From the sequence record OR844650.1: 64,000 nt of DNA; one strand, given 5' to 3'. The notes under the pieces are model-generated. The model was not told the DNA's origin, made no database searches, and worked only from the letters and a program-made list of their open reading frames with translations. Made by a program: the position numbers and the translations under genes. Shown here piece after piece: positions 3,106 to 61,455 of the stretch; the first letter of the stretch is position 1, and the number at the start of each line of letters is the position of its first letter.

Positions 3106-4248
3106 CTAAAAATCCTTTAGTACAATTTTCATGTATTTTATAAGAGTCTCTTTGTAATCAACTTTCTTATTGTTATACATTGCAAAGGCCAAGCCCTGAC
3201 GATTCAGTTCATTAGTTAAACACTCCTGAACCTTCATTGCGAATTCCTTTCGCTCCAAGTGCTTGTGTTCCTTGACGAAGCTTTCTACTTCATCTTGTAA
3301 TGCATTATAGCACGAAAATACCAATTGTTCCATTCTTAATATCTTTTGCATAGCATATTCATCAGTACTGAACAATTGTTTTAAATCATCACTTGAACCA
3401 TTTAATACTGCTTCATATAAATGAGAATCAATAATAATACTATCTTTTGTAAGATGTAATGAACTGTACCAGTCAGTCTTTATTTTACACATTGTCCCAT
3501 TATTTAGGATGCACACAAAACCCTCAATATCAAGCATTTTATGAACTTCCTCCACGCTTTCACGGAAGGTATTTCGTACCGGAAAAGTGTGATGAATATC
3601 TTTTCCAGTCATATTAGTACTGTACTGTGCAAGACATGGAAACTTATCACGTAGTGCTTTACCACATAGCAACTCACCACTCACACGATGACGAACGTTC
3701 AGTACAAACAGTTGTTCTACCTGATATGGTAATACAATTCGGTACTCTGGGCTTGTATACTCCATATTAACTGTGTAACCTAAACGTTCCGCTTCGTCGA
3801 TGTACTGATACAAATTCTGGTTCTCGTTAATAAGTCGAGTACTGTTAATCGCATGGTCAGAATACAATGCAGTATGTGATTTACAACGAATCTCACCATC
3901 ATTATCACGGTAAGTACTGATAATCGAACCATCCAACTTAGGCATCACTACCGCAATGTCATCGCATGTGGTGTTAGCAGGGAACATTGTAGCAGGATTC
4001 TCGTAAGCATTGAAGAACTTTTTCATTGTACGTGCTGCACAACGTATCATTTCACCTTCTTCATCAATTTCCCACATAGAGCCACGGGTTTCCAACGCAT
4101 TTGGTTGCATGAAATCAGTGTATGATGCTAGACGATAACTGAATACACGATACGTGCCACCAGCAGGACTTTTATGATCCACATAAAAGAATGCATCGTT
4201 TGTATTACATAAGTGCATTAAATCTTCATATATTTGCAAAAGGGTCAT
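3106..4248 (-). CDS. rnlA: RNA ligase 1 (T4 RnlA family)
   Basis: Motif I KLDGS, N-terminal YRxFSYRLASYTDF, KFFN, EYTSP, EGFV, KIKTDWY; close to pseT as in T4. Confidence 0.93.
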   Translation of the reverse strand: MTLLQIYEDLMHLCNTNDAFFYVDHKSPAGGTYRVFSYRLASYTDFMQPNALETRGSMWEIDEEGEMIRCAARTMKKFFNAYENPATMFPANTTCDDIAVVMPKLDGSIISTYRDNDGEIRCKSHTALYSDHAINSTRLINENQNLYQYIDEAERLGYTVNMEYTSPEYRIVLPYQVEQLFVLNVRHRVSGELLCGKALRDKFPCLAQYSTNMTGKDIHHTFPVRNTFRESVEEVHKMLDIEGFVCILNNGTMCKIKTDWYSSLHLTKDSIIIDSHLYEAVLNGSSDDLKQLFSTDEYAMQKILRMEQLVFSCYNALQDEVESFVKEHKHLERKEFAMKVQECLTNELNRQGLAFAMYNNKKVDYKETLIKYMKIVLKDF

Positions 4249-11008: not shown

Positions 11009-11542
11009 TTATTTCCTCATGTATTTTATAACGTCTTCAAATAATTGTATTTTTAAGTCCTCGTCATTTCCAGGTAAAAACTCACGAAAACTATCAAAAT
11101 CTTCATTTTTTGCGAAGTTACGCATTTGTGTTGAGCTATATTGACTTACATTACGGTCAATACCTGCTTGAATTGCTTTTATACTACAAAAATTATACAA
11201 CTTACCATTGTACATGTCAAGAGTTTTTTGAAAAGAATCAATACGGTCAGAACCACATATGAAAAGAACATCTAAGTACTTTCCATCCAGTTCTCTCATT
11301 ATATCAAATAGATTGTCTTCTGTGTAGATGTTCTCTTGCACTGAAGGATAGAATCCCTCTGTATAATACATTTTTAGTTCAGGTGGGAGTGGGTTTTTTA
11401 TATTGTCAGTACTGGTGCTTAGATATATTTTTAAATCAGCATTGTACTGTTCTTTCAATTCCAATGCACTGTTGAATACAAACCCATGTCCATTATGTAT
11501 TGGGTTACATCTCATGAATGATAGTATACATGTTTCTTTCAT
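11009..11542 (-). CDS. HxGH-class nucleotidyltransferase (phage cytidylyltransferase-like)
   Basis: R.NPIHNGH, KNPL, GSDR, YNG, SSTQMR match the cytidylyltransferase-like family of T4-like phages. Confidence 0.8.
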   Translation of the reverse strand: MKETCILSFMRCNPIHNGHGFVFNSALELKEQYNADLKIYLSTSTDNIKNPLPPELKMYYTEGFYPSVQENIYTEDNLFDIMRELDGKYLDVLFICGSDRIDSFQKTLDMYNGKLYNFCSIKAIQAGIDRNVSQYSSTQMRNFAKNEDFDSFREFLPGNDEDLKIQLFEDVIKYMRK

Positions 11543-12324
11543 TTAAGGTACTCTCTTACAATTCTCACAACTTCATCCAGCTTATCAATCCCAACAGTTT
11601 CGGTGTATCCACTACCATATTCTTCTTTTGTAAAGAATGTATGATAACCCATACTTTTTATATACTTTTCAATTTCATTAGTATATCCAATATATTCATG
11701 AAGATATAACTCATACTTTTGTTTGGAAGTATTTTCAATATCATATTTTCTGCGAGTGATATCTTTAGAAACACCTAATTTGAAATGGTCTTCAGCTTTC
11801 AGGATATAAAAATAAAGCTCATCATCAGATTTAACATCATGCTTTAAATTATAGGTTGAGCATTCTGGACAACCATAGCCATGAACTTTGAAATTATTAT
11901 AACTGGTAGTGTTCCATATACCATGTGTTGGGCATTCCAAAGATAGTATTGAATCTTTACCAGAAAATTTATGTATGCCATGAAATGTATACATATTTCT
12001 TTCTGAATCATTTGCGATAATTGATTTTACATTTTCACTTATTGATTCTTTGGTATGTTTTTTGCAGCCAACACATACAGGACAACCGACTGTTTGATGT
12101 GTAAAATTACCAATTGTACATTTCCATGTCCCATGTTCAGAACATTCCATTTCACAATAAGTTCCGTGTCCATTCCATTCACCAACAAAGCCATTAAATT
12201 TAATATTTGATAGCTTAGGTGCTTTTAGTTTATCATTTATTCTACTAGCATAAACACGTGGGTGTAGAGCATTTGGTGGTTTTCCTATCATAGAAACTGT
12301 GTTGATATCAATGTATTTTGTCAT
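11539..12324 (-). CDS. putative free-standing homing endonuclease (CxxHG/CPxC Zn repeats + GIY-YIG-like domain)
   Basis: CSEHGTW..GCPVC, CPTHGIW..GCPEC, then YFYIL..FKLGVSKDITRR..GYTE. Confidence 0.7.
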   Translation of the reverse strand: MTKYIDINTVSMIGKPPNALHPRVYASRINDKLKAPKLSNIKFNGFVGEWNGHGTYCEMECSEHGTWKCTIGNFTHQTVGCPVCVGCKKHTKESISENVKSIIANDSERNMYTFHGIHKFSGKDSILSLECPTHGIWNTTSYNNFKVHGYGCPECSTYNLKHDVKSDDELYFYILKAEDHFKLGVSKDITRRKYDIENTSKQKYELYLHEYIGYTNEIEKYIKSMGYHTFFTKEEYGSGYTETVGIDKLDEVVRIVREYLK

Positions 12325-12842
12325 AAATTCTTCATCACCAATCCAAGAGATTTAAGATAATTGATTTTAGCAGTGGTTAAGTACTTATCCAGTACTATCA
12401 GACACGAAGGAAATGGTGCTGAATCTGTTTTCTTCTCTGGTTCTTCTGGGATACCAAATCGTAACCTTCCCTTAATAAAACAAATACAATCACAAACTTT
12501 CGCAGCATAATCCTGAAAGGCTATAGTATCCGTTCTTGATGGTACAAGAATTAATACAGTTGCCCCTTTATTATACGCATCTACTGCTTTAGATAACCAT
12601 GTTTTCAAATCACTATATGGAGGGTTCAACCAAACTATATTCTTTCCCCAATCCTGTGAAAGAGAATCATCATTTGGTGTAAAATAATTCTCACATAATG
12701 CAGTCTCATCAACACAAGCAGCATCAAGCGTAAATCCCCATAACTCATCTAACTCTTCAAAGAAATCTTTTGGAGTTGTCCAGTTATCTTTACCAGTACT
12801 AAAATGTACTGAATGTTTTTTCGAAGCATCCTTCTTCGACAT
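12321..12842 (-). CDS. dam: phage DNA N6-adenine methyltransferase (phage Dam family)
   Basis: WTTP..F..L...GFTLDAA, catalytic NPPY, LVPSRTDT, FIKGRLRF; target site not established. Confidence 0.88.
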   Translation of the reverse strand: MSKKDASKKHSVHFSTGKDNWTTPKDFFEELDELWGFTLDAACVDETALCENYFTPNDDSLSQDWGKNIVWLNPPYSDLKTWLSKAVDAYNKGATVLILVPSRTDTIAFQDYAAKVCDCICFIKGRLRFGIPEEPEKKTDSAPFPSCLIVLDKYLTTAKINYLKSLGLVMKNL

Positions 12843-12858
12843 TATATAATTCCTTTTG

Positions 12859-13401
12859 TTAGAGACAGTTCTGTACTATCTTATCAAAAGTACTACTGTC
12901 AATGTTATATTCATATAAAAATTTAAAATGTGAACCATAACGCATCATCAGATTAAACTCTTCTTCAGTATTAAATTTGTAATCATGAAGAGTTTCAGGG
13001 GTACATGTTAAACCTAAAAACTCAATTATTTCAGATGTTACATCATTTCCTGAATTGAAGTATTTAACCCAAACACATTTTCCTTGTGGGTTGTATTTTC
13101 TATATTCTCCTTCTAGTTCTCCTTTTATAATATGAGCCTTAACACTTATTAAATTATTACTATATCTTTCCTCGAAATAATTACCATACTGTGCTTTTAA
13201 TATTGTTGGTTTTTGTGTAGGAAGTAATTTGACTGAAGTAACTTCAATGCCGTTCTGTAATTCCTTTATATACGAAATGCATCCTTTTTCTTTAAAAACA
13301 ACAAATCCAGTAAAGATATCTTCGTCTTGTGATTGATTAATGCAATCATCAAAATTCAAAGTTTTATAAGTAACAGTTTTTTCTTTTCTAATAAATGCCA
13401 T
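12859..13401 (-). CDS. hypothetical protein with MORN-like repeat and degenerate family A motif
   Basis: GELEGEYRKYNPQGK; TEEEFNLMM; start moved to MAFIRK. Confidence 0.65.
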   Translation of the reverse strand: MAFIRKEKTVTYKTLNFDDCINQSQDEDIFTGFVVFKEKGCISYIKELQNGIEVTSVKLLPTQKPTILKAQYGNYFEERYSNNLISVKAHIIKGELEGEYRKYNPQGKCVWVKYFNSGNDVTSEIIEFLGLTCTPETLHDYKFNTEEEFNLMMRYGSHFKFLYEYNIDSSTFDKIVQNCL

Positions 13402-13509
13402 CATTATTCCTATGGAAACATCAATGAATATACGTGACGTTGATTTCATCAACATCAGTAGAATTACCATGCTACGCATGTCTAATTCTACAAGTACTAT
13501 TTTCTTTTA

Positions 13510-14023
13510 ATTAATATTGACGGGGTTTGCTTGAGCATATTTCATCCCCCCGCAGGGGAAAGAACAAAAAAGTTTGACGCTGGTGGCCTTCACATAGTTC
13601 ATATCACGAATTCTCTTACGAGACGAAAGCGGGTTGCTCTGTTTCTCTCTATCGCGGTTCTTGTAGCAACGGTCGTCGGTCTTAAACATCCCGACACATA
13701 ATACAAATACCATATGACCAGTACTTGTATTTGATTTCACAAAATTTGGACGCAACTATATTGTATAATTCCGACCGCATATTTCTTATGAAATCTCCCT
13801 TAGATAATTGGTAAGGTGCGATCCTTATATGTCTATCGAGGAACTCTCTTTATCCTATTGGAGTTCTTTATACAGCCGCATTGCCGTGAGTGGTTCAAAC
13901 TATGCCATCATCTAACGGGTTTCATCTGCTGTTCGTACTGAAAGGACTACTCATCTACCCTCTACATTTTCGAGTGGATTAGGCTTTTAATCATTTCCTT
14001 ATGGGAACCTTTCAGGATTAAAA
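13510..14023 (-). ncRNA. candidate large structured ncRNA (class unknown)
   Basis: ORF-poor, more GC-rich than flanks, many complementary segments; strand inferred from G-U pairs and an upstream TGnTATAAT. Confidence 0.5.
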
Positions 14024-14054
14024 AAAGGTGACTAACATATTATGTTGTCACCTT
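14021..14054 (-). terminator. rho-independent terminator or 5' hairpin of the ncRNA
   Basis: AAGGTGAC..AACAT / ATGTT..GTCACCTT stem plus T-run on the minus strand. Confidence 0.65.
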
Positions 14055-14082
14055 ATATTATATCATTAACTTATCATTTGTC

Positions 14083-14937
14083 TCAGTTATATTCGGTTTT
14101 TTCTGTGAAATTTGTTAGTATATCAACACTAAAACTTCGAATAACCTCAATCTTGCTTGGCATGAAACGGTGTTTATTTTTAATATACAACTCATCATCT
14201 TCAATAAAAGATGTAAAAATGAATGCCATATCTTCACGTGGAATTTGTAAAATATCACACATTTCATTTGCCGATGCTACTGGTGAATCATTATAGTACT
14301 GAGAGTATGCACTAGATTGGCGACCGATTATAATAGAATTTCTGATTAGAAAATTACTACAGTACTGAAAATCTTTGTAGTACTTTTCAATAATGTACGG
14401 CATAAGTGCTTCTTTCACGTCTTCATACCCATTAGTACTATCAATTGCTATACAGTAATCTTCACGTTCTTTTTTCTCATGATGGTAATCATAAACATAC
14501 TCAAAGAATAAATTTTCATTTAATGAATCATTTAAACCAACTGATCCACTATAGTATGATTTTCTATCATTCATTCGATCATCTGGGCATGATGCATACA
14601 TAGAAGTGTCATGTGATGATGTACCAATATAAATTTTCTTAGTAATATGATTATATGCTATGTAATCATAATCTTGAACTCCAGTTAGCATTAACTGGAA
14701 CATTAAATCATCAGGAACATCAATTAACGGGTACTCAAACTTCGAATATCTACTGCGGCAGAAGTTCTTTTCAAATGCTCGGTATGCGATAAAATCTTTT
14801 AGATTTTTACAAGATTCATGTTCATGAGCACTACTGCTACGTACATTGACATTAGTCGATGTGCAATATCCATCCGAATCTTCGGTGAAGTTACCAGCAT
14901 AATCCTTATTGTAGTCAACGATTAGATAAAGTTTCAT
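14083..14937 (-). CDS. hypothetical protein with family A-like motif
   Basis: PDDLMFQLML; start moved to MKLYL. Confidence 0.7.
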   Translation of the reverse strand: MKLYLIVDYNKDYAGNFTEDSDGYCTSTNVNVRSSSAHEHESCKNLKDFIAYRAFEKNFCRSRYSKFEYPLIDVPDDLMFQLMLTGVQDYDYIAYNHITKKIYIGTSSHDTSMYASCPDDRMNDRKSYYSGSVGLNDSLNENLFFEYVYDYHHEKKEREDYCIAIDSTNGYEDVKEALMPYIIEKYYKDFQYCSNFLIRNSIIIGRQSSAYSQYYNDSPVASANEMCDILQIPREDMAFIFTSFIEDDELYIKNKHRFMPSKIEVIRSFSVDILTNFTEKTEYN

Positions 14938-14949
14938 ACATCTCCAGAC

Positions 14950-14982
14950 AAAAAAAGGACGAGATAACAAATCCCGTCCTTT
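14950..14982 (-). terminator. rho-independent terminator
   Basis: AAAGGACG / CGTCCTTT stem plus T-run. Confidence 0.65.
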
Positions 14983-14988
14983 GGTTTA

Positions 14989-15294
14989 TTAGTGACTTGC
15001 CCAGCAGTAAACAGGACGTAGATTTTCCATTGGATTTACTTCAGGCTTCAGTACTGTTACACGTACTTCATATGGAGTTCCATCTGCATGATGGAATGTT
15101 TCATAATGAATACTTTCAATAAATGTTTCGTATTCTTCTTGTGAACGTGAACGTACTGCTGATGAATATTTCTTCTTAGAATCTGCTTTAAGTGTAACAC
15201 TGACTAGTTCTGATTCCTCACCTTCTTCAAGTTTGTTGAAATCGAACTCTGGTACACCTTCAAACATATCAAATTTCATTCCATTGTCTTCCAT
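14989..15294 (-). CDS. hypothetical protein
   Basis: AAGG RBS, followed by terminator. Confidence 0.7.
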   Translation of the reverse strand: MEDNGMKFDMFEGVPEFDFNKLEEGEESELVSVTLKADSKKKYSSAVRSRSQEEYETFIESIHYETFHHADGTPYEVRVTVLKPEVNPMENLRPVYCWASH

Positions 15295-33549: not shown

Positions 33550-33998
33550 TCTATACCTTCTGGATCTTTACGAAGTTCTTCGAAATCCAAATAAAATCGA
33601 GGACAGTTAACACTCTTTAAATACCACATAATAACTAATGCTTCAAGTACTTCATCATCGTAAACAGTACTGTTTTGGAAGTAATACTCTTCACTATCCC
33701 ACGGACCATCCAGTACTTCATAATTCAAAATTAATGGTTTTTTGCGATTAATAAAACGAATGCTACCATTTTCAACATAACTAATAAATTCTGCATCTCT
33801 ATTGTATTCAGAAAACGATATAGGACTATTGGAATTCAACCCAAGAATAACCCTTACACCAACGGAGTTATTATACATTTCATCTTTGTAGTAGTTGCCG
33901 TTCTCGGCTTTGTACACTTCTTTGAACTTTCCTGCCTTTATATCGTCAAAGTATCCATGTAGTTCTTTTGCTTTTTCAAGAGCACTTTGTAATGACAT
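33546..33998 (-). CDS. family A protein (GPWDSEEYYFQ subgroup)
   Basis: MSLQSAL..LDGPWDSEEYYFQNST. Confidence 0.8.
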   Translation of the reverse strand: MSLQSALEKAKELHGYFDDIKAGKFKEVYKAENGNYYKDEMYNNSVGVRVILGLNSNSPISFSEYNRDAEFISYVENGSIRFINRKKPLILNYEVLDGPWDSEEYYFQNSTVYDDEVLEALVIMWYLKSVNCPRFYLDFEELRKDPEGIE

Positions 33999-34464
33999 TA
34001 CCTTCTCCTACAGTATTCTCTACATATTCATAATCAAAATAGAAACTACTGGAGTCAATACTTTTGAAATACCACATAATCACAATAACATCCAGTTCTT
34101 CTTCATTGTACAACGTACTATTCTGGAAGTAATACTCTTCACTATCCCACGGACCTTCTAGTACTGAATAAGGAATGATAGTGTCATCAGCATCACTATC
34201 TGTGTTGTAGATGGTAATATCTTCATTACGGCAATAACTAATGTACTGATTGTACATATGATATTCACAGTTATCACTGTCACCAGTATCAGTGTGCAGT
34301 ACTAATGTTTCTGCACATATCTCGGACTCGTCATAATCGTCACGGTCTTTTACAAAAAATTCAGTATCAGATGTTTTATATACACCTGGAACTGAACCTT
34401 CTTGTACCATAATCATATACTCATGAATCTTCTTTGCTTCTTTCAATGCACTTTGTAATGACAT
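33976..34464 (-). CDS. family A protein (GPWDSEEYYFQ subgroup)
   Basis: MSLQSAL..LEGPWDSEEYYFQNST. Confidence 0.8.
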   Translation of the reverse strand: MSLQSALKEAKKIHEYMIMVQEGSVPGVYKTSDTEFFVKDRDDYDESEICAETLVLHTDTGDSDNCEYHMYNQYISYCRNEDITIYNTDSDADDTIIPYSVLEGPWDSEEYYFQNSTLYNEEELDVIVIMWYFKSIDSSSFYFDYEYVENTVGEGNVITKCS

Positions 34465-34907
34465 TACAAATCCCCTGTACTTAAATATTCACATGCTCCC
34501 CAGTCAAGAAAGAATGGTTCAAAATTCAATTCCTTAAAGTACCACAACACAACCAAGGAATCAAGAATTTCTTGGTTAAAAATGAGACTCTGTTGGAAGT
34601 AATACTCTTCAGTACCCCACGGGCCATCAAGTACCCCGAAGTCAACAGGTGTATTTGTTGTGTCAAAAGTAATCTTAGTACCTGGAATATATACAAAAAA
34701 ATTAGTATATTGACTACATGAAGAGTACTGTATAGTATTGTCTTTATCCTGTCCCATAAGTAAAATATCATCAGAGTATGTCTTTATACCTGATAGATAA
34801 TACTCATCACCAAATGCACTTACTTTATCACCATAGACCCCACTTTTTATGTTATCGTGGAAGTGATGTATTCTGTGTGCTAGTTCAAGTGCACTTGCTA
34901 AACTCAT
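34464..34907 (-). CDS. family A protein (GPWDSEEYYFQ subgroup)
   Basis: MSLASAL..LDGPWGTEEYYFQQSL. Confidence 0.8.
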   Translation of the reverse strand: MSLASALELAHRIHHFHDNIKSGVYGDKVSAFGDEYYLSGIKTYSDDILLMGQDKDNTIQYSSCSQYTNFFVYIPGTKITFDTTNTPVDFGVLDGPWGTEEYYFQQSLIFNQEILDSLVVLWYFKELNFEPFFLDWGACEYLSTGDL

Positions 34908-35374
34908 ATATCCTCTTTAATAACTCGTAGTAGATCCAAGTCCAAATAGAAGCTAGGACAATCTGTATTATTAAAGTACCACAGAATGACAAGCTTGTCA
35001 AGTACATCTTCCTCGTAGATAGTATTCTGCTGGAAGTAGTACTCTTCACTTCCCCAGTCATTATCCAGTACTGAATACGGAAGATGTTTCTCTGCTGCAC
35101 CAGTTATAATGTCAGTATATTGTATTAAAATATCAGCATCACGACAGAAGTACATGTAATTATCTTCCAGATTAACATCACACCCAGTGAGTGTTGTTTC
35201 AGAAGAATCTAAGTTTTCTTCGTACATGTGAATGTACTCACTACTGTCATCGTATATCATTCGACAATAAGCTTTACCTTCCTTGAATAGATACCCATTG
35301 AGACAATTTGCTACAATTTCTTTGCTGCATAAATCAATTAACTTCGCAATCTCTAATGCTCTTTCTAAACTCAT
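34904..35374 (-). CDS. family A protein (GPWDSEEYYFQ subgroup)
   Basis: MSLERAL..DWGSEEYYFQQNT. Confidence 0.8.
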   Translation of the reverse strand: MSLERALEIAKLIDLCSKEIVANCLNGYLFKEGKAYCRMIYDDSSEYIHMYEENLDSSETTLTGCDVNLEDNYMYFCRDADILIQYTDIITGAAEKHLPYSVLDNDWGSEEYYFQQNTIYEEDVLDKLVILWYFNNTDCPSFYLDLDLLRVIKEDI

Positions 35375-35375
35375 T

Positions 35376-35870
35376 TCAACCCCTGTTAATACCGTTATCT
35401 ACAGTTTTCTTTACGTATTTGTAATCGAAATAGAAGTTCCCAGAACCAATACTTTTAAAGTACCACATAATTATAATAACATCAAGTACTTCATCATCGT
35501 ATACAGTACTTTGTTGGAAGTAATACTCTTCACTATCCCACGGACCTTCCAGTACTTCACTCGGAATTATAATGTCATCGGAATCGCTGTCAGTACTGTA
35601 TATGGTAATATCTGCATCATTAATATAGACCATGTACTCATTATGCATATCAATGAAACATTCATAATCATTAGGGTCGGTATCTAGTATGCACGTTTCT
35701 GTATCCAGTACACACGTTTCTGTATCTGAGTAGTCATTATTAAGGAGGTTATCCGGTACATAATATTGAGTACTTGTGTCTTTGAAAACACCGTAAACTG
35801 AACCTTCTTTTGCCATATTCATGTACTCATGAATCTTCTTTGCTTTTTCCAATGAACTCTGTAATGTCAT
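35376..35870 (-). CDS. family A protein (GPWDSEEYYFQ subgroup)
   Basis: MTLQSSL..LEGPWDSEEYYFQQST. Confidence 0.8.
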   Translation of the reverse strand: MTLQSSLEKAKKIHEYMNMAKEGSVYGVFKDTSTQYYVPDNLLNNDYSDTETCVLDTETCILDTDPNDYECFIDMHNEYMVYINDADITIYSTDSDSDDIIIPSEVLEGPWDSEEYYFQQSTVYDDEVLDVIIIMWYFKSIGSGNFYFDYKYVKKTVDNGINRG

Positions 35871-53796: not shown

Positions 53797-53885
53797 GATA
53801 AAACTCCTTAATTTAGGAGGGAGAACCATTTCCCCCTCTCTATGTAAAACATTATACTTGATTCTAAGTACTATGCAAGTACTTT

Positions 53886-54218
53886 TTACATTTTAATACC
53901 TGGATTCAGATAGCGGTGAGAACCATATTCTGGATCGGTTTCGGTCCAGTACTGTAAATCGATAGTACCTTTCGCGTTAATCTTGTCTACCAGCTTATTC
54001 ATCTTAGCGTATACTACGTCAGCATCGATGCGTTTAAAGCCAGTAGCTTTAGTGAAGTAGTAGTGATTTGCTTCACTATCATTAAGGATATACCGAGCAC
54101 CGTTTGCAGTCTGTGCGATAATGATTGAGTATTCTACTTCCCGATCCAGACCGTCGATGAATACAGATGAAACATTGGTACGGATGAAAGCTTTAACGAT
54201 AGCGATTGAAGTACTCAT
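53886..54218 (-). CDS. early-region hypothetical protein
   Basis: AGGAG RBS, own promoter at ~54272-54300. Confidence 0.75.
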   Translation of the reverse strand: MSTSIAIVKAFIRTNVSSVFIDGLDREVEYSIIIAQTANGARYILNDSEANHYYFTKATGFKRIDADVVYAKMNKLVDKINAKGTIDLQYWTETDPEYGSHRYLNPGIKM

Positions 54219-54368
54219 TTTGAATCTCCTAACTTTGTGGGCCGTCGCACCATTGCCGCCCTACGAGATACATTATTGCAGTACTGATATACTTTGTCAA
54301 TACTTTTTTTATTAATAGTTTTCACCCCACCAGCAGATAGTTACTCACCGTTATTAACTATATATTTT

Positions 54369-54452
54369 AGATACACTCCTGCACCCAGTGGGCTAGTTTT
54401 TGTCTATGCGTATATAATAGCAAAGGGACTGACCGGAGTCAATCCCTTTTTT
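54369..54452. repeat. repeat element R2 copy 1 (type A)
   Basis: AGATACAC..GCACCC..TGGG..TATATAATAGCAAAGGGACTGACCGGAGTCAATCCCTTTT. Confidence 0.85.
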
Positions 54453-54464
54453 TATTCTTTTTTG

Positions 54465-54665
54465 TTAGATGATTCTCCAATCTTCTACGATCATGGTAAG
54501 ATAACGGACCATCGATTCAAGTGATTCGAATTCCCGATAGTCTGCCGCTCCACCAGCGGTACAAGTACAGCCGATTAAACCATTTTGTAATTCCTTAATC
54601 TGTACATCGATAAGGTTGGCTTTAGCTTCTTTCAGTACTTCAACCAGGGCGATAGCGATAGACAT
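54465..54665 (-). CDS. early-region hypothetical protein
   Basis: GGAG RBS after cassette. Confidence 0.7.
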   Translation of the reverse strand: MSIAIALVEVLKEAKANLIDVQIKELQNGLIGCTCTAGGAADYREFESLESMVRYLTMIVEDWRII

Positions 54666-54754
54666 AATGTTTTACTCCAAACTATTGACGGGAGAACTAT
54701 TCCCCCGCTCTATGTAAAACATTATACATTACTTGTTAGTACTGTCAAATAGTT

Positions 54755-55012
54755 TTATGAAATATCTTCGATGTAGTCGGCCCATTTCATTTTTTCAGTA
54801 CTGTCAATGGCTACCGGATTATTTGGATCAAACCATTCACCATTACCGCAGTACATACCAACGGCTACGGTTTTATAGCCATCCTGGGCCGTACTCCACG
54901 ACATTGCACGATAGATATGGCCTTTAACTGGTTGCAGTACTGGTAACGTTTTATGGTCTTCTACGTAGGCCATAGCTTGAGGATTTACCCGATATTGTGT
55001 GAATTGTTCCAT
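54755..55012 (-). CDS. early-region hypothetical protein
   Basis: AAGGG RBS, TTGACA promoter at ~55041-55069. Confidence 0.7.
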   Translation of the reverse strand: MEQFTQYRVNPQAMAYVEDHKTLPVLQPVKGHIYRAMSWSTAQDGYKTVAVGMYCGNGEWFDPNNPVAIDSTEKMKWADYIEDIS

Positions 55013-55088
55013 GATGTTTCCCCTTGTAGTTAGTAAAGTTATTACATCAGTACTATCAAGCTATGTCAATAGTACTGAAATAAAACTT

Positions 55089-55313
55089 TTAGATTAGATT
55101 ATTGATGCCGTTGATGGTAGACTCGCTTTCTTCTTTCTCCCATTGGCGGTAGTACTTCCATGCTTCATGATATGTGGCGATTAGTTCATCTTTTTGATCC
55201 TGAGTACATGCCAGTACTGAATCACGGTGAGCGGTGTTATAGATAGAATCGAATGATTTCTTCTCTTCTGCCAGGTTAGCTACTTCCCGCATCAGTTCAT
55301 CAAAGTTAGCCAT
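55089..55313 (-). CDS. early-region hypothetical protein (helical, acidic)
   Basis: AAGGAG RBS after cassette. Confidence 0.7.
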   Translation of the reverse strand: MANFDELMREVANLAEEKKSFDSIYNTAHRDSVLACTQDQKDELIATYHEAWKYYRQWEKEESESTINGINNLI

Positions 55314-55380
55314 TTTATTACTCCTTTTAGTGGGGGAGGATATCTCCCCCTATGCAAAACATTATACTTTGTTTTAGTTA

Positions 55381-55644
55381 TTATGCAAGTACTTTTTTCA
55401 TATAAAGATTATATTCTACACCGCCGTAACCTTCTACGATGATATGTTTTGCGTTATCACGTTTGCACATAGTGAAACCGTTGTTGATGTGTTCTGCATT
55501 TTCCAGGGCGACATCACCGATAGCGGCACATACGGCACTAATAACAGTATTCCGCAAAGTACTGGTATCATTAGCGGTCATAGTAGTTTGCAGTACTACG
55601 TTGTCGTATACGTGTGCATTGATAGTGATTTCGATAGTGTTCAT
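55381..55644 (-). CDS. early-region hypothetical protein
   Basis: AGGAG RBS after cassette. Confidence 0.7.
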   Translation of the reverse strand: MNTIEITINAHVYDNVVLQTTMTANDTSTLRNTVISAVCAAIGDVALENAEHINNGFTMCKRDNAKHIIVEGYGGVEYNLYMKKVLA

Positions 55645-55730
55645 GGTGTATCTCCTGGACTGGCGGGAGAACTATTCCCCCGCTCTATGTAAAACATTAT
55701 ACGTTAATCTAACTACAATGCAAGTACTTT

Positions 55731-55922
55731 TTAAATTTTATTTCCGATATAGTCCGGTCTATTCTTTTCGGTCATACGCTTTGCTAATGTTTGCATATGG
55801 CTTATTGCGTTTAATGTGTCTTCCTCCAGGGATGAATCAACATAATCAGGATCATTCTTCACCTTGCAATGATTATGATAGCGTAGTACTGCCAGTACTT
55901 TTTTAACTTCTTCTACTGTCAT
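55731..55922 (-). CDS. early-region hypothetical protein
   Basis: ATGA-coupled to the upstream gene. Confidence 0.65.
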   Translation of the reverse strand: MTVEEVKKVLAVLRYHNHCKVKNDPDYVDSSLEEDTLNAISHMQTLAKRMTEKNRPDYIGNKI

Positions 55923-56191
55923 AATAAGTACCCCACTTCGTTAGCTTTCAGGTTAGTATCAATCATCAGTGGATTTTTGTAGTTCACAAAACGATTAGTT
56001 TTCTCGATAGCGAATCCCATATAATCCAGCTTACTAACAGTACATTCATTCTTAAAAACTTCTTTCGCTGCATCGATGGCTGATTGCATGGATAACCGAC
56101 CATCTAAATTAATGTTTCCAAATGATCCACCAGCAGAAGTAGGATTACCGTTCATATCTTTAATGATCATAGTAGCGGAGTAGCTGGACAT
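55919..56191 (-). CDS. early-region hypothetical protein
   Basis: AAGG RBS after cassette. Confidence 0.7.
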   Translation of the reverse strand: MSSYSATMIIKDMNGNPTSAGGSFGNINLDGRLSMQSAIDAAKEVFKNECTVSKLDYMGFAIEKTNRFVNYKNPLMIDTNLKANEVGYLL

Positions 56192-56278
56192 AATTTTGTT
56201 TCCTTTTAGTATCGGGGAGAACTATTCTCCCCTTGATGTAAACTATTATACAGTACTGATATACTTTGTCAAATACTT

Positions 56279-56686
56279 TTATTCGCCCATATAGATTAGA
56301 TTATCATCGCCTACATAGGGATCGCAAACGTTGATTTCTTCGCAGTACTTAGTGAATACATCGCCATAGTGACCTAAACCACGATCCCAAAAACCAGTTC
56401 CGTGACCTTCGCGGGTAAGGAACAGATCATGACCAGCTTGCTCATAACCGTAATCAATAAACATACCGCGAACTACTTCCAGATCATTACCGTGTTTCTC
56501 AATGAAGCGAGAACATGCAATCACCGCCGCTTGACGTGCTTCATCAGATAACTCATAATCTTCCAGGTAATCGCCGTTATCATTATGTACAGTACTGAAT
56601 TGCATAGCTTCAATGTAAGCTACAACCATTGCAGCATGATTTTTATCGTTAGTGATGTTCCGAGCGAGATTAGTAGTAGTAGACAT
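56279..56686 (-). CDS. conserved phage hypothetical protein (GHDxxLTRxGHGxGFWDR motif)
   Basis: Motif recalled as widespread in phage early regions; function unknown. Confidence 0.7.
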   Translation of the reverse strand: MSTTTNLARNITNDKNHAAMVVAYIEAMQFSTVHNDNGDYLEDYELSDEARQAAVIACSRFIEKHGNDLEVVRGMFIDYGYEQAGHDLFLTREGHGTGFWDRGLGHYGDVFTKYCEEINVCDPYVGDDNLIYMGE

Positions 56687-56769
56687 GATTTTATTCCTTA
56701 TTGTATTGGGGAGAACTATTCTCCCCTTGATGTAAACTATTATACAGTACTGATATACTTTGTCAATAC

Positions 56770-56991
56770 TTAATTACGTTTAAAATGATATGTGCCTTTA
56801 TCATCCTGTACGCCCCACACTGATTTACCATCAACACCAGTGAAACCGGATTGTAATTCAATATGGAAACCATTATTATCAACTACAAAAACTTTTTTAT
56901 TTTCATCCCGATAACATTGATATTCTGAATCAACATTAAAGGCCGCATCATTCAGAAGATTGGAAGCGTAAATGCAAGTCATTGTAGTCAT
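56770..56991 (-). CDS. early-region hypothetical protein
   Basis: Start moved to MTTMTC after cassette. Confidence 0.7.
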   Translation of the reverse strand: MTTMTCIYASNLLNDAAFNVDSEYQCYRDENKKVFVVDNNGFHIELQSGFTGVDGKSVWGVQDDKGTYHFKRN

Positions 56992-57084
56992 GATTTTATT
57001 CCTTATTACCAGGGAGAACCATTTCCCCCTCTCTATGTAAAACATTATACTTGATTCTAAGTACAATGCAAGTACTTTTTATCA

Positions 57085-57204
57085 AATAGTTTTCAGTACT
57101 GAATACTTATATAATAGATACACTTCCGCACCCTATGGGTCAGTGAGTTATCTCTCAATGAATATATAATAGCAAAGGGACTGACCGGAGTCAATCCCTT
57201 TTTT
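57085..57204. repeat. repeat element R2 copy 2 (type B)
   Basis: AAATAGTTTTCAGTACT..AGATACAC..GCACCC..TCTCTCAATGAATATATAATAGCAAAGGGACTGACCGGAGTCAATCCC. Confidence 0.85.
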
Positions 57205-57212
57205 AATCTTTT

Positions 57213-57797
57213 TTATCGTGTTACCTTACTTGCTTCTACATCACGCTTTTTATAGTACTGATTCCAGATATTGCGGGTTAAACCGTAATCAAGTACTTTA
57301 ATAAGGCCGTTGCGATCCTGGCCGATATTCTGTTTTCTGATATCTCTTATCGTTAGTGTTGACAGTGTATCATCAACGTGTTGTAGTGCATCAGCAAAGC
57401 GGTGCTGGCGTTCAATTGCATTACGTTTAATATTGTACTTTAATTCGTTGCACGCGTTAACGTGCTTTACACTGCCTTTACTTGCAGTACTCAACCGATC
57501 CATAACGATAAACATATTATCAGGATCGCATAAATGCATATGCACCTTTGCAAAGTACTGTTTCAATTGAGGGCGGTCATAGTCTAAAAAATTCCATACC
57601 TTACATTCAGTTTCATTTTGTTCTACACCCGCATCACAATTGGCGACCTTAATCACTAACCGATCATTTAAAGCGAATACAATACGGGAAGAACCCGCAC
57701 CGATGATCTCCAGACCAGCTAACCGACAAGCTGAAAGGATCTCTTTGTTGGTTTCCATTTCTGACAGGGTACGGATGAATTTAGTATAATTACGCAT
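57213..57797 (-). CDS. minimal protein-kinase-fold protein (putative Ser/Thr kinase)
   Basis: GAGSSR loop, VIK Lys, EQNETE helix C, DIRKQN catalytic loop, LDYG; start moved to MRNYT after AAGGAG. Confidence 0.75.
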   Translation of the reverse strand: MRNYTKFIRTLSEMETNKEILSACRLAGLEIIGAGSSRIVFALNDRLVIKVANCDAGVEQNETECKVWNFLDYDRPQLKQYFAKVHMHLCDPDNMFIVMDRLSTASKGSVKHVNACNELKYNIKRNAIERQHRFADALQHVDDTLSTLTIRDIRKQNIGQDRNGLIKVLDYGLTRNIWNQYYKKRDVEASKVTR

Positions 57798-57828
57798 TGC
57801 ATGTTCTCCTTGAGTTAATGAAACTATC

Positions 57829-58071
57829 TTACAGTACTTTACTATCAATGGCAACCACTTTTTTCACACTAACCGCGTGAATCACTTCCTTAGTGTTTTT
57901 AGTACTGAATACTTTCGCTGTTCCTTGTTCTACTGCAATGCGATAACGACCGTTAACATCAACCATATTAATAAAGTCCGGTGTACTAAACCGAGTAGTA
58001 CGGCATTTCAGTACTGTTAACAGTTCCACCAGCGATGTAGTTTCTTTGATACGTTTTTCTAAAGTAATCAT
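57829..58071 (-). CDS. early-region hypothetical protein
   Basis: Start moved to MITLEK; promoter TTGACA-17-TACTAT. Confidence 0.65.
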   Translation of the reverse strand: MITLEKRIKETTSLVELLTVLKCRTTRFSTPDFINMVDVNGRYRIAVEQGTAKVFSTKNTKEVIHAVSVKKVVAIDSKVL

Positions 58072-58128
58072 TTTGTTTTCCCCGTGTTGGTATGTACATA
58101 TAGTACTAAAACATTTGAGTACTGTCAA

Positions 58129-58347
58129 TTAGATAATTGCATATTTCTTTAAAGATAATGCGTCTTGGGTTGGCTGATACTCAATGCCGTTACCGTTATC
58201 TACTTTAACTAATAAACCTTTGTCAATTAGTTTTTTAATAGTCCTTTGGCCTTGTTGAAAATTGGTAAAATGTGAATCATTACGAAAGGTATAACCGTGC
58301 TTAACTGCTTCATCAATAGTTTTCTTTTCGATTTTAGATAATTTCAT
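58129..58347 (-). CDS. small hypothetical protein (possible winged-helix)
   Basis: RTIKKLIDKGLLVK; start moved to MKLSK; promoter TTGACA-17-TATTAT. Confidence 0.65.
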   Translation of the reverse strand: MKLSKIEKKTIDEAVKHGYTFRNDSHFTNFQQGQRTIKKLIDKGLLVKVDNGNGIEYQPTQDALSLKKYAII

Positions 58348-58400
58348 TTTGTTTCTCCCGTGTTGGTATGTGTACATAATACTAAAACAATTGAGTACTG

Positions 58401-58655
58401 TCAACGTGATATTAGTTTTATTTTCTTATTATATTGTTGATGTTCATAAAGGTTTATCTTTCCTGTGTTCTCTATTACTATTCTGTTGTTAGTGTCTACA
58501 TCGATTACACGCAGTTTTCCGTTGCTTAACTTCCTTGGTAATAGGTTACCATTAATAAACTCATTAGCAAGCTGTACGGCCTTTGTGATGATTCTCTGTG
58601 GTGCTTTATAGTGTACCCGCAAGATATTATCTTTAGATAGTTGTACCTTAATCAT
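58401..58655 (-). CDS. small basic hypothetical protein
   Basis: AGGA RBS. Confidence 0.65.
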   Translation of the reverse strand: MIKVQLSKDNILRVHYKAPQRIITKAVQLANEFINGNLLPRKLSNGKLRVIDVDTNNRIVIENTGKINLYEHQQYNKKIKLISR

Positions 58656-58670
58656 TTTAGTTTATCCTAT

Positions 58671-58695
58671 AAAAAAGGCGGGAACTGATCCCGCC
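58671..58695 (-). terminator. rho-independent terminator
   Basis: GGCGGGA-ACTGA-TCCCGCC plus T6 on the minus strand. Confidence 0.75.
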
Positions 58696-58717
58696 GTGTT
58701 GTTAGTACTGCAAGTTA

Positions 58718-59113
58718 TTAGATAACCTGGCGGCGTTTACTGTATACTGTTACACGATTACCCTTACGGTCGTGTCGGATCTCTTTCTGGTTGCGAACCA
58801 GTTCACTTGGACGCTTAAGGTTTGCCAGGTGATCCGCGTGAGTCCAAGCGGTATGGTTTGTCTGTACTTTGATATCAGAATCAGCGATAAATTCATCTTG
58901 TGCGTTAAGTACTGCCGCCAGTAAATCCGCTCGTTTTAGTTCTGCTGCTGTTAGTACTGGCTCCGGTGAATTCACGATATCAGAGATTTCTTTGAACTGT
59001 ACGGCCCAGCGTTGACCTTTCGGTGCATCTTTGCCCATGTCTTTAAATGCTGCTCCTTCCTCGCGTGCAACAATACGGGCAGCTTCACGGGTAGCGTAGA
59101 ATTTAGTAATCAT
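58718..59113 (-). CDS. early-region hypothetical protein
   Basis: Promoter TTGACA-17-TATAAT at 59158-59186. Confidence 0.75.
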   Translation of the reverse strand: MITKFYATREAARIVAREEGAAFKDMGKDAPKGQRWAVQFKEISDIVNSPEPVLTAAELKRADLLAAVLNAQDEFIADSDIKVQTNHTAWTHADHLANLKRPSELVRNQKEIRHDRKGNRVTVYSKRRQVI

Positions 59114-59208
59114 GGTATACATCCTATTAGTTGAGTTAGTACTACAAGTTAGAGTCTATTATAAAGTACTATCTGGGCAATGTCAAATAGTACTTTAAAT
59201 GGATTCTA

Positions 59209-59532
59209 TTACATGTCTTTCTTACGTTTTACATCGTAGTAGCGAACTGTTATTTCTTTGTTAATCTCTTTTTCGATGCGGTGAATAACTTTTTCTTTCG
59301 GGTTGAAACCTATAACGGTTTCTTTAATGATCTCCAAGCCCGTGTATTCTCCTTGTGTACCGTAACCGTAAGTAAAGGTTTCATGTCCCAAGTCTTCCCA
59401 GCGGTCGCCAATTAACGCGGACACGTAGCAAGAGTGGTAAGTGTTACCGTTCCGATCAGTCCAGCGATTAACTTTAATGTCAAAGGAGGTTACAATTTTC
59501 AGTTCTACTTTCTGGGTAAGGATCATAGCCAT
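59209..59532 (-). CDS. early-region hypothetical protein
   Basis: After cassette. Confidence 0.7.
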   Translation of the reverse strand: MAMILTQKVELKIVTSFDIKVNRWTDRNGNTYHSCYVSALIGDRWEDLGHETFTYGYGTQGEYTGLEIIKETVIGFNPKEKVIHRIEKEINKEITVRYYDVKRKKDM

Positions 59533-59619
59533 TTTTATTTCTCTCTCTTTGTTAGGAGGGGAACCATTCCCCTCGCTTGATGTAAACTATTATACAGTAC
59601 TAAGATACTTTGTCAATAC

Positions 59620-59802
59620 TTATTTTTTGGAAAGTTTACGCATTAATTCTACGCTTTCTTGTGAACGTTTTGCTACCTGGCAAGCTGTATGGGCAGTAAA
59701 CATTTTTGTATAGTCTGACGCTTTGCCACCAAACCGAGCGGCACGTTCACGGGCACTTGGAACTAATACTATTTCTTTCTTGCAGATAGTGCACTTAGCC
59801 AT
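59620..59802 (-). CDS. small Cys/His protein (CxxC...HxxC)
   Basis: CTIC and HTAC; after cassette. Confidence 0.7.
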   Translation of the reverse strand: MAKCTICKKEIVLVPSARERAARFGGKASDYTKMFTAHTACQVAKRSQESVELMRKLSKK

Positions 59803-59889
59803 TTTAATTTCTCTCTTTTAGTTAGGAGGGGAACCATTTCCCCGCCTTGATGTAAACTATTATACAGTACTAAGATACTTTGTCAATAC

Positions 59890-60165
59890 TTAAGTATTGT
59901 AAATGTCGTGAATAGTGATAAAGTTTTTACGCCCGTAAACCTGTAAATCGGTATTAATGTAGTGCTTATCAAGTACATCCTCGACGCTTAACGCGGTGTC
60001 GTGAATATCTTCGTAGAATTGGGGATCTACAATCTTGCTTAAGTCATCCGGCGTTAACTTATCGTTAAGCCATTGAACCGCCTGGATATCTGCATCACGT
60101 TTCCATTGTTCCAGGTTAGTAGTCAGTACTTGCTCGATTTCGTTAGCTGTCAGTAGAATCCGCAT
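59890..60165 (-). CDS. early-region hypothetical protein
   Basis: AAGG RBS; promoter at 60199-60226. Confidence 0.7.
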   Translation of the reverse strand: MRILLTANEIEQVLTTNLEQWKRDADIQAVQWLNDKLTPDDLSKIVDPQFYEDIHDTALSVEDVLDKHYINTDLQVYGRKNFITIHDIYNT

Positions 60166-60233
60166 TTTAATGTTTCCTTATCAGTGGTTGATGTAAGTAT
60201 TATACTCGTTTACTTTCTATTGTCAAACTATTT

Positions 60234-60309
60234 TATCAGGGGAGTTTTTCGTATGTCTTACTCCTGGACTACTTAACGGGGTTACTTGTTTCGTTCCCCG
60301 TCCTGATGT
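60234..60309 (-). ncRNA. candidate ~75-nt three-way-junction sRNA
   Basis: Own promoter (TTGCAT-16-TATAAT at 60315-60342); ATCAGG/CCTGAT closes CGGGG/CCCCG and GGAGT/ACTCC stems; no start codon. Confidence 0.45.
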
Positions 60310-60354
60310 AAAACATTATACTTGATTCTAAGTACAATGCAAGTACTTTTTAAA

Positions 60355-60470
60355 AATAGTTTTCAGTACTAGCCACCAGCAAACAATAGATACATTTATG
60401 CACCCTGTGGGCTGATTTGTTTCTATGCGTATATAATAGCAAAGGGACTGACTGGAGTCAATCCCTTTTT
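60355..60470. repeat. repeat element R2 copy 3 (type A)
   Basis: Same core; ACTGACTGGAGTCAATCCC variant. Confidence 0.85.
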
Positions 60471-60479
60471 CAAATATTT

Positions 60480-60629
60480 TTAAACTTCTTTCGGGTTGCG
60501 ATAGGTGATAGCGTTCGGGTACATTTGTTTAATGTTATTCCATGCCTGGTTAACATTATAACCACTTGAGCGAATCAGTTGGTTACTACCGACACCTTGA
60601 AACACTACTTCGAATAAGAATTCTTTCAT
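60480..60629 (-). CDS. small hypothetical protein (49 aa, not in ORF track)
   Basis: MKEFLFEVVFQGVGSNQLIRSSGYNVNQAWNNIKQMYPNAITYRNPKEV; GAGG RBS; ATGA overlap. Confidence 0.55.
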   Translation of the reverse strand: MKEFLFEVVFQGVGSNQLIRSSGYNVNQAWNNIKQMYPNAITYRNPKEV

Positions 60630-60799
60630 GCTTTCACCTCGCTATCTGCTTTACCTTTACGCCAGGACATTACTAATTGTTCGCGTTGCCATAAGTCGAG
60701 TGATACAAAAAGTTTTGCGGTATCACTTTTAGGATACTCGCCATTAGTACCTAACCGATAAAATAGATCTTTCAGTACTGATAATTCTACTTGGATCAT
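60626..60799 (-). CDS. small hypothetical protein
   Basis: Start moved to MIQVEL after cassette. Confidence 0.65.
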   Translation of the reverse strand: MIQVELSVLKDLFYRLGTNGEYPKSDTAKLFVSLDLWQREQLVMSWRKGKADSEVKA

Positions 60800-60885
60800 T
60801 ATACTTTCCTTTTTGTTAGGAGGGGAACTATTCCCCTCTCGATATAAAACATTATACACTTTATTCAGTACTGTGCAAGTACTTT

Positions 60886-61098
60886 TTAATCTTTCAGCCA
60901 ATGATCTTGGATGAATTTTTCACCGAAGCCTTGCTGCATGGATTGTAACAGTCGTTCACGGTGAGCGGCGGCAAATTGCTCAGTACTATGCGTTACACCT
61001 GGTTGATAACGTGATTCACCATTGGGGGCGATGTATTGTACATCCCACGGTTTAGCGTTAGTATCAGACCATTTACGAACGATTAGTTGACCTTGCAT
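60886..61098 (-). CDS. small hypothetical protein
   Basis: Start moved to MQGQL after cassette. Confidence 0.65.
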   Translation of the reverse strand: MQGQLIVRKWSDTNAKPWDVQYIAPNGESRYQPGVTHSTEQFAAAHRERLLQSMQQGFGEKFIQDHWLKD

Positions 61099-61185
61099 TT
61101 TTCTTTCCTCAGTACTGGGGAGAATCATTTCTCCCCTTCATGTAACTTATTATACAGTACTATAATCTATTGTCCAGTACTTTTT

Positions 61186-61374: not shown

Positions 61375-61455
61375 TTTTATTTCCTCTTAGTAGGGGAAGA
61401 CGTTTCCCCTTGATGCAATACAGTATACACTATCTTTCAGTACTTTCAATACTTT

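Follow-up and report, generated by a model that had tools for sequence, protein, structure and literature searches.

A candidate family of large structured RNAs, kept in several copies by RaK2-like jumbo phages and shared with enterobacterial chromosomal islands

The window analysed here, a stretch of 64,000 nt from record OR844650.1, contains a gene-free gap of 681 nt (13402-14082) between two minus-strand genes of unassigned function. Over 13480-14082, blastn gives identities of 100% with Escherichia phage vB_EcoM_CRJP21 and 99.8% with phage 121Q, the latter belonging to the genus Asteriusvirus, jumbo coliphages with genomes of ~350 kb. The upstream neighbour (14083-14970, minus strand; PHROG 15199) ends at 14083. 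The length of the gap follows from the start of the downstream neighbour, which lies at 13401 rather than at 13479 according to the G17 annotation and a match to PHROG 16210 over residues 1-180. Careful published annotations (G17, Munch, GAP32) place no gene in between. As noticed in a first-pass annotation made from the sequence alone, the gap is more GC-rich than its flanks (G+C of 0.37-0.445 vs 0.28-0.30). The same annotation had proposed a structured noncoding RNA at 13510-14023; an RNA within the gap is upheld by the present analysis, but its extent is not, since the conserved unit is larger: it begins at ~14085 and extends to 13517 or beyond, and additional conserved hairpins follow down to ~13439. 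We found no second copy of the element inside the window and no change in GC skew at the locus, and ARAGORN reported no tRNA in the window or in 34 copy-bearing loci. On the plus strand, a consensus scan of 12800-15000 returned three promoter-like sites within 13736-14061.

A putative promoter on the minus strand occupies 14057-14085. It consists of a -35-like TGAGAC (14085-14080) that shares nucleotides with the upstream gene's stop codon, and of the extended -10 element TGATATAAT (14065-14057), which had been picked out before and is now seen to be kept in nearly all copies. Phage and bacterial copies alike carry TGnTATA(A/C)T with TGAAAC, TGGAAC or TGAGAC 14-17 nt upstream, and a regular expression for such promoters hits only two sites in the window. 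The class is the same as that of the 'divergent RpoD-like' promoter of phages CBB and GAP32, with its -35 consensus TGAAACG, and in 11 of 18 cases such a promoter stands in front of a gene block with many DNA-synthesis functions (PMC5259590). Judged from the promoter, transcription would start at ~14052-14050. Immediately downstream, a hairpin GGUGAC...GUCACC with a U7 run (14020-14052, minus strand) represents the intrinsic terminator of the upstream gene, annotated as such in G17, Munch and GAP32, and would at the same time form the RNA 5′ end in the syntenic copy. This arrangement, in which the first 30 nt of the RNA coincide with the terminator hairpin of the upstream gene, exists only in the clade of syntenic copies.

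At the other end, most of the non-syntenic paralogues possess a terminator-like hairpin and U run of their own 3′ of the core. All copies continue past the core into a C4/G6 hairpin and then a conserved box with CGUCA(G/A) at its end. This motif recurs ~60-100 nt upstream of its box-end copy; beyond the box follow an AT-rich spacer and then one to three hairpins with C-GNA-G loops. That sequence past a terminator-like hairpin (the G hairpin, the CGUCA boxes and the downstream hairpins) should be conserved is left unexplained if the RNA simply acts in trans. In most copies, the genes downstream run in the same direction as the element, and these genes are different at every locus. Paralogue B of G17 is flanked by two genes on the opposite strand and must therefore constitute a unit independent of any downstream gene.

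Is the element transcribed? Public wastewater and whole-organism metatranscriptomes, whose contigs are unstranded and might partly derive from DNA, contain contigs that concentrate on 13471-13986 in three of four runs. In run X3, a 5-kb stretch is covered only at 13471-13923 (depth 7-16), leaving aside two bins with low values; the peaks of runs X10 and X11 fall into the bins covered in X3, while coverage in run X2 is more even. One metatranscriptome contig spans 13471-13647, and a contig from X10 crosses the terminator hairpin, G hairpin and 3′ box of a paralogue, implying at least partial read-through of this terminator. With libraries that are unstranded and possibly contain DNA, such enrichment is suggestive of expression.

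Among 50,697 phage records, blastn recovered the gap from 62-71; apart from two phages recorded on Xanthomonas, these are RaK2-like jumbo phages with Enterobacterales hosts. Phages outside the RaK2-like group yielded no copy in this set. Outside Asteriusvirus, identity amounts to 66-75% over ~450-530 nt. Synteny holds across Asteriusvirus, Eneladusvirus, Mimasvirus and Munch-like phages, and Alcyoneusvirus has the core only. The same site is occupied in Munch, Kaldavass, Serratia BF, GAP32, XbC2, CBB, Yen9-03 and RaK2, with a gene of 260-290 codons, the element, a gene of ~175 codons and a Dam methylase following one another; the best matches in Yen9-04 and XaC1 sit in other neighbourhoods. 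Per genome, the element is found at four (Asteriusvirus) or five places, adding up to 275 in 62 records. Copies in 121Q lie at ~193, 247 and 326 kb on one strand; the fourth Asteriusvirus paralogue was not located. An invariant signature in the 3′ core (GACCGTTG ... CAACCCGC), present in all copies, identifies 41 loci in IMG/VR, 8 loci in GTDB genomes and 63 loci in metagenomes. In a tree of 48 distinct copies, several paralogue clades emerge, each common to different genera, and the duplications are therefore old, with all copies having been retained.

The first-pass annotation had suggested collecting homologues and examining them for covariation. In an alignment of 39 distinct full-length copies in the minus-strand (RNA) sense, compensatory changes indeed exceed those of slid and shuffled controls. 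As RNAalifold on the raw MAFFT alignment recovered the structure only in part, helices were chosen from a covariation scan and visual inspection, then tested by pair counting. The full proposal comprises 17 helices and 98 base pairs, with four of the helices forming pseudoknots; ~90% of positions are paired over the 39 copies as compared to ~40% when slid, and compensatory double changes occur at 64 of the 98 pairs in counts uncorrected for phylogeny. For the main structure (90 pairs, 16 helices), 91.5% of cells are paired vs 39-47% after sliding partners by 1-3 columns, two-sided changes affect 57 of 90 pairs vs 23-31 when slid, and the likewise phylogeny-uncorrected covariation score is 0.487 vs 0.06-0.12; none of 500 shuffles reached the observed values. 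The helices with the best support are P4 (4 of 5 pairs), P5 (6 of 6), P9 (11 of 12) and those termed b and c. Folding energy is lower on the minus strand (z = -1.87) than on the plus strand (z = -0.33), and G-U pairs, for instance in helix c and the C4/G6 hairpin, are valid on the minus strand only. By these sequence criteria, together with promoter orientation and the neighbouring terminators, the RNA sense is the minus strand.

The predicted fold is described here from its 5′ end, all features being on the minus strand. The 5′ leader (13985-14023) includes helix P1a (14023-14016 with 13992-13985), the 5′ strand of pseudoknot PK0 and the variable hairpin P1 (14007-13995). P1a corresponds to the complementarity TTTTAATC/GATTAAAA seen previously, and forms in the syntenic clade, with 7-8 of 8 pairs, but not outside it. 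The segments CTGAAAGG/CCTTTCAG, also noticed at the outset, prove to be the long-range pseudoknot PK0: its 5′ strand CUGAAAGG (14015-14008) pairs with the P3 loop (13945-13938), 7 of 8 pairs covary, at least eight different complementary sequence pairs occur among the copies, and 89.9% of cells are paired vs 22-49% when slid. Hairpin P2 (13955-13982; 8 pairs, 7 with two-sided changes; 89% paired) displays the conserved loop GAAAAUGUA, and P3 (13935-13950; 100% paired) is flanked by invariant GAUGAG and CGAA. In the P4 domain (13872-13932), P4 (13932-13928 with 13876-13872; 100% paired, 4 of 5 pairs covarying) encloses P4a (13918-13915 with 13887-13884; 100% paired), the invariant GGCAAUGCGGC and an inner hairpin that exists in two alternative versions, exchanged among paralogues.

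The middle of the RNA starts with hairpin P5 (13841-13866; all 6 pairs covarying, 93% paired), whose loop GAUAA (13854-13850) pairs with UUAUC (13807-13803) to give PK1; here 5 of 5 pairs covary and 77% of cells are paired in a region of imprecise alignment. The following junction segment (13796-13840) contains the invariant GAUAGACAUAU, hairpin P6 (13826-13813), in which changes are one-sided only, the 3′ strand of PK1 and the invariant UAAGGGAG. Next comes the P7/P8 rod (13732-13795), an optional domain with the conserved module UACAAUAUAG...CGUCC.AAAUU, in which helix 8 is weaker (70% paired). A P8-type module is inserted in P13 in all 8 copies that have no P8, and at both sites in two copies; occupancy of one of two insertion points is a pattern of ribozyme peripheral docking elements, as in globular RNAs. 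Hairpin P9 (13700-13731; 12 bp, 11 of 12 pairs covarying) connects via its loop (13717-13712) to 13604-13599, forming PK3 (6 of 6 pairs covarying, 100% paired), and P10 (13675-13695; 4 of 5 pairs covarying, 92% paired) carries a conserved UAAGAC loop.

The 3′ core (13599-13674) contains the invariant GACCGUUG, P11/PK2, helices b and c, P13 (13623-13612) and the 3′ strand of PK3. Helices b (13656-13652 with 13609-13605) and c (13649-13645 with 13629-13625) are part of a three-way junction, and P11/PK2 (13670-13666 with 13637-13633) joins the loop closed by helix c; all three are 99.5-100% paired. The 3′ tail (13517-13598) consists of a degenerate P15 with the first CGUCAA box, a U6 run (13571-13566), the C4/G6 hairpin (13560-13545), in which the only changes are C-to-U on the 5′ arm, and the conserved box that ends with the second CGUCAA (13522-13517). 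Two more hairpins (13439-13488), one at 13488-13461 with a CGUAG loop and one at 13453-13439, lie 5′ of the next gene's ribosome-binding site and start codon; C-GNA-G-loop hairpins recur downstream of most phage and bacterial copies, and those in the window may be part of the RNA. Unpaired stretches that never vary include GAUGAG, GGCAAUGCGGC, GAUAGACAUAU, UAAGGGAG, GACCGUUG and GAAAC. In the predicted structure, the four pseudoknots tie the 5′, middle and 3′ parts of the RNA into one body, as in a globular RNA.

Conservation and covariation thereby confirm seven of nine features listed in the first-pass annotation. Besides PK0 and the extended -10 element, its GAACTC/GAGTTC is P5, its 13700-13710/13721-13731 is P9, GTCGG/CCGAC is P10 and GTTGC/GCAAC is P11, all of them covarying, and the CCCC/GGGG hairpin is conserved, with one-sided changes of the G-U type only. 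The long-range pairing of CGGTCG with CGACCG found no support, because its 5′ half has a local partner in P8.

Copies of the element are also present in bacteria, which, like its multi-copy nature, goes beyond what had been seen from the window. Our search of complete E. coli genomes located it in two chromosomes. In E. coli LR-29-1, it resides in an island of ~10 kb between ffs and ybaA and is a complete family member (nhmmer, 393 bits). GTDB species representatives contributed seven chromosomal contigs with one copy each, from Buttiauxella, Silvania, two Serratia, Enterobacter chinensis and two other Enterobacteriaceae, plus one short contig binned as Clostridium, and metagenomes about nine loci; the plasmids we searched contained no copy. 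A recurrent gene order is evident in the islands: an integrase (of the tyrosine type or a large serine recombinase), the RNA, a convergent CI/LexA-like S24 repressor gene, a divergent HTH_35 regulator, a 286-aa protein with a hydrophobic N-terminus (F1), an LprI-like protein and a small resolvase. None has a recognisable replicase. F1 belongs to no Pfam, PHROG or PADLOC family and has no tblastn match in the 50,697 phage records; considered as a partner of the RNA and dismissed, it also lacks similarity to the two genes that flank the window copy. One island encodes KwaB of the Kiwa defence system, and that of LR-29-1 encodes DUF4326, DUF488 and dual-OB genes. Bacterial copies have kept the phage-type promoter, every pair of PK2 and PK3 and 86-94% of the nested pairs, and are therefore under the same structural constraint as phage copies. 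They fall at two places of the tree, each next to phage copies, which indicates that the element has been exchanged between phages and islands.

The first-pass annotation could not match the RNA to any class, and neither could we. With Rfam 15 covariance models at gathering threshold, the whole window gave no match; for 13300-14200 with E up to 10, only chance matches were returned, the best of them on the terminator hairpin; and two phage paralogue loci and six bacterial loci gave nothing but the host SRP RNA. Families in scope included ROOL, GOLLD, OLE, RNase P, tmRNA, 6S, group I/II introns, hammerhead and pRNA, among others. A search of the literature on jumbo-phage noncoding RNAs, satellites and ROOL/GOLLD uncovered no account of this RNA. 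Unnamed candidates upstream of Dam methylase genes are mentioned for a catalogue of 10,006 viral candidate RNAs, which might include part of the element. Likenesses noted by eye were dropped, since covariation partners contradict them and no covariance model matches; these concerned RNase P CR-V and P4, the P3/P7 topology of group I introns, the sarcin-ricin loop and the hammerhead. Hammerheads have CUGAUGA and GAAA cores, with stems III and I closing on the cleavage site. In the GAUGAG-hairpin-CGAA arrangement of 13955-13932, an A stands at the position of the invariant U4, one A of GAAA is missing, and the flanking strands pair elsewhere (in P2 and P4). Altogether, a new family of large structured RNA, absent from Rfam 15, is well supported by comparative sequence evidence.

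Which known RNAs does it resemble? ROOL and GOLLD are frequently adjacent to tRNA genes and form homo-oligomeric, RNA-only cages. Our element shares with them the size class (0.5-0.8 kb), the many conserved helices and pseudoknots, invariant loops, a phage or mobile-element habitat, a transcription unit of its own, which here is putative, and the lack of an assigned function. It differs from them in matching neither covariance model, in having no tRNA neighbours (34 loci and the window), in its Enterobacterales hosts (rather than Firmicutes or rumen organisms), in its four to five diverged paralogues per genome and in being common to integrase/CI islands. Similar to phi29 pRNA, it is a phage-encoded structured RNA with its own promoter and covarying loop-loop pairings, yet it is three times larger, multi-copy and without an Rfam match. 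The sequences of PK1 and PK3 differ among paralogues within one genome, which would suit specific assembly as in pRNA; everywhere, the loop matches the partner strand of its own copy, so that pairing within one molecule suffices. We know of no RNA requirement of T4-like terminases. The Pseudomonas phage PA5oct, a jumbo-phage relative of the RaK2 group that likewise depends on host RNA polymerase, produces four abundant transcripts of 0.24-0.62 kb without ORFs (ncRNA001-004), defined by RNA-seq (PMC7318152); ncRNA001 and ncRNA002 were rejected as homologues, as nhmmer with all filters off detected no similarity.

Could the gap encode a protein after all? An 82-codon ORF is present in the window (13507-13755, minus strand), and GGGGGG-AUG at 13550-13543, after the G-rich hairpin, resembles a ribosome-binding site followed by a start codon. 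The former is intact only in the 121Q group. In the 37 copies outside it, the start codon is mostly lost and the frame at the ORF start meets a stop within 1-41 codons in every case, in keeping with the earlier statement that the gap lacks a convincing coding sequence; the short ORF shows no peptide conservation in the alignment, because an indel shifts the frame across nucleotides that are still conserved after the AUG. Given also that careful annotations leave the gap empty, we regard a coding function as practically negligible. A DNA-level repeat without RNA function, for example a packaging, recombination or protein-binding site, would account for four or five repeats per genome and their sharing with mobile islands, but appears very unlikely in view of the element's own promoter, the enrichment of RNA-library contigs over it and compensatory changes that maintain Watson-Crick and G-U pairing on one strand, including between positions more than 100 nt apart. 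In line with cross-genus conservation, covariation in 17 helices, loss of the ORF, the conserved promoter and contig enrichment, we thus retain the initial proposal of a structured noncoding RNA of ~500 nt on the minus strand.

Functionally, this RNA might act in cis, as a leader that works on its own transcribing polymerase (processive antitermination, the mode of HK022 put RNA) or influences translation or stability of the downstream operon. Like put, it follows directly on a promoter and leads co-directional gene arrays, in the window and at most other loci, with terminators read through further downstream; conserved and transcribed sequence follows the terminator-like hairpins inside the unit, and the downstream C-GNA-G-loop hairpins are reminiscent of binding sites for proteins or polymerase. 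We nevertheless consider a leader improbable: paralogue B precedes opposite-strand genes and has no co-directional genes downstream, the island RNA converges on a CI-like repressor gene, downstream genes vary by locus, and size and complexity lie far above those of known cis antiterminator RNAs, put itself measuring ~65 nt with two stem-loops. Alternatively, each copy could be a replication origin, whose folded transcript would hybridise at its 3′ invariant G run and prime the leading strand. There is precedent in ColE1 RNA II (~550 nt), which forms a persistent RNA-DNA hybrid and primes leading-strand synthesis, as do the T4 oriE, oriF and oriG transcripts. Resemblances extend to a length of ~0.5 kb, the possession of a promoter, a G-rich stretch close to the 3′ end, the presence of several copies in one large T4-like genome and a promoter class associated with DNA-synthesis genes, in CBB concentrated upstream of them. 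Four to five dispersed copies per 350-kb genome would fit, as would ~0.5 kb between promoter and an invariant G5-6 run in a genome of 30% G+C, an AT-rich stretch thereafter, and conservation and transcription of the sequence past the terminator-like hairpin. Small islands without a replicase would then keep a single copy so that the machinery of an infecting phage amplifies them. Against this, four covarying pseudoknots, invariant loops and relocation of a module far exceed what known primer RNAs need, and neither sequence relation nor comparable tertiary elaboration links the element to ColE1 RNA II or the T4 transcripts; the locus shows no GC-skew change, neither iterons nor an antisense regulator equivalent to RNA I were seen, and the G run already has a pairing partner within a conserved RNA hairpin. 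A primer function, the main alternative, is thus possible, though doubtful.

On balance, we lean toward a trans-acting RNA that builds up in the form of a compact particle, serving as a ribonucleoprotein core or as a ribozyme while genes with TGAAACG promoters are being expressed. Bacterial RNA polymerase would transcribe the minus strand from the TGAGAC/extended -10 promoter, and the transcript would fold, through at least 17 conserved helices and four long-range pseudoknots, into one compact body. As a discrete particle, it would act in trans rather than on the adjoining gene, its activity residing in the invariant unpaired nucleotides, be it as the RNA part of a ribonucleoprotein or in catalysis. 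Expression would coincide with that of the 'TGAAACG'-promoter genes, many of which serve DNA synthesis, and island copies might exploit or interfere with the same phage process. To our knowledge, large RNAs with such a density of conserved tertiary pairings are rare, and almost all are ribozymes, ribonucleoprotein cores or RNA-only cages. A bolder version, unlikely as it may be, envisages a new natural ribozyme or self-assembling particle, required by RaK2-like phages in several loop-pairing versions for a core step such as DNA replication or host take-over, with defence or satellite islands in Enterobacterales chromosomes having copied the RNA and its promoter to sense, exploit or sabotage the phage. 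If true, this would reveal an arms race at the RNA level between a giant phage and a mobile island.

With four or five copies kept in RaK2-like phages and its presence in enterobacterial islands, the element has strong claims to be a functional RNA of a new class. It connects the biology of jumbo phages, most of whose genes have no assigned function, with that of mobile islands, and we know of no earlier description of an RNA common to mobile islands and a virulent phage. Several phages with the element have E. coli as host, laboratory K-12 strains such as MG1655 among them, which makes the system tractable, and the paralogue sets represent ready-made natural mutational series. Should the element prove to be an origin RNA, it would show where RaK2-group phages begin their replication; should it instead be a particle acting in trans, the few large RNAs described from bacteria and phages would gain a new class.

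The automatic call of an ORF at 12859-13479, the gene downstream of the RNA, proved too long: its first 26 codons (window 13402-13479) fall inside a conserved non-coding hairpin, and a start at 13401 is backed by annotation as well as by PHROG. A minus-strand ORF of 261 aa at 11539-12324, placed between the Dam methylase gene and the cytidylyltransferase-like gene, combines DUF723 with two stretches of CapR homology. Phage G17 has no such ORF at the corresponding site, and in contigs of two RNA libraries exactly 782 nt are missing there. The ORF probably represents a homing-endonuclease-type mobile gene.

Elsewhere in the window, the promoter class of the RNA (TGRRAC-N-TGnTATAAT) has a single other match, at 3304-3332 on the minus strand. 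The plus strand at 53800-63900 carries more than nine cassettes (repeat families D1, D3 and D4), each pairing a G/C-rich hairpin with a downstream (T)ATGTAAA(A/C)-N-TTATAC motif. These cassettes look like terminator-plus-phage-promoter units of a plus-strand gene array; the C4/G6 hairpin in the 3′ tail of the RNA, with GAUGAAA after it, bears a faint likeness to them. Five tandem paralogous units spaced ~440–480 nt apart at 33579-35650 (families D2, D7, D18 and D19) are probably a small tandem gene family.

Within the conserved helix P4, the RNA carries an inner hairpin that exists in two unrelated versions (columns 212-250 of A2, our alignment of 39 distinct full-length copies): one is short, its loop being CAUAGUUUGUA; the other is longer and includes GCAGUC and GACAUAAGAC. 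Judged from the aligned copies (L004, L005, L007, L012, L021, L024 and other loci), the versions are spread over the paralogue clades as if they had been exchanged by recombination.

Does the RNA occur outside phages? In our locus survey, intact copies were found within small chromosomal islands of Enterobacterales, as in the chromosome of E. coli LR-29-1 (locus L056, 11961-12545) and at loci L057-L062, L064, L071, L075, L082, L086, L090, L092, L116, L123 and L124. Most of these island copies have their nearest relatives in one XaC1 phage paralogue (L008) and in a copy on a short, 15.7-kb metagenomic contig (L018). With an island copy as blastn query, the best match in XaC1 lay at a site other than L008 (OR258281.1, 48670-49261). 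Unlike most island copies, that of E. coli clusters with a Serratia BF-type paralogue. Transfer of the RNA between phages and islands seems to have occurred more than once.

The islands share a recurrent gene order, namely integrase, RNA, CI/LexA-like repressor, HTH_35 regulator, a 286-aa protein without known family, LprI and resolvase, and the island at L071 includes KwaB (Kiwa) among its cargo. The RNA-bearing islands may represent a family of satellites or defence islands tied to RaK2-like phages.
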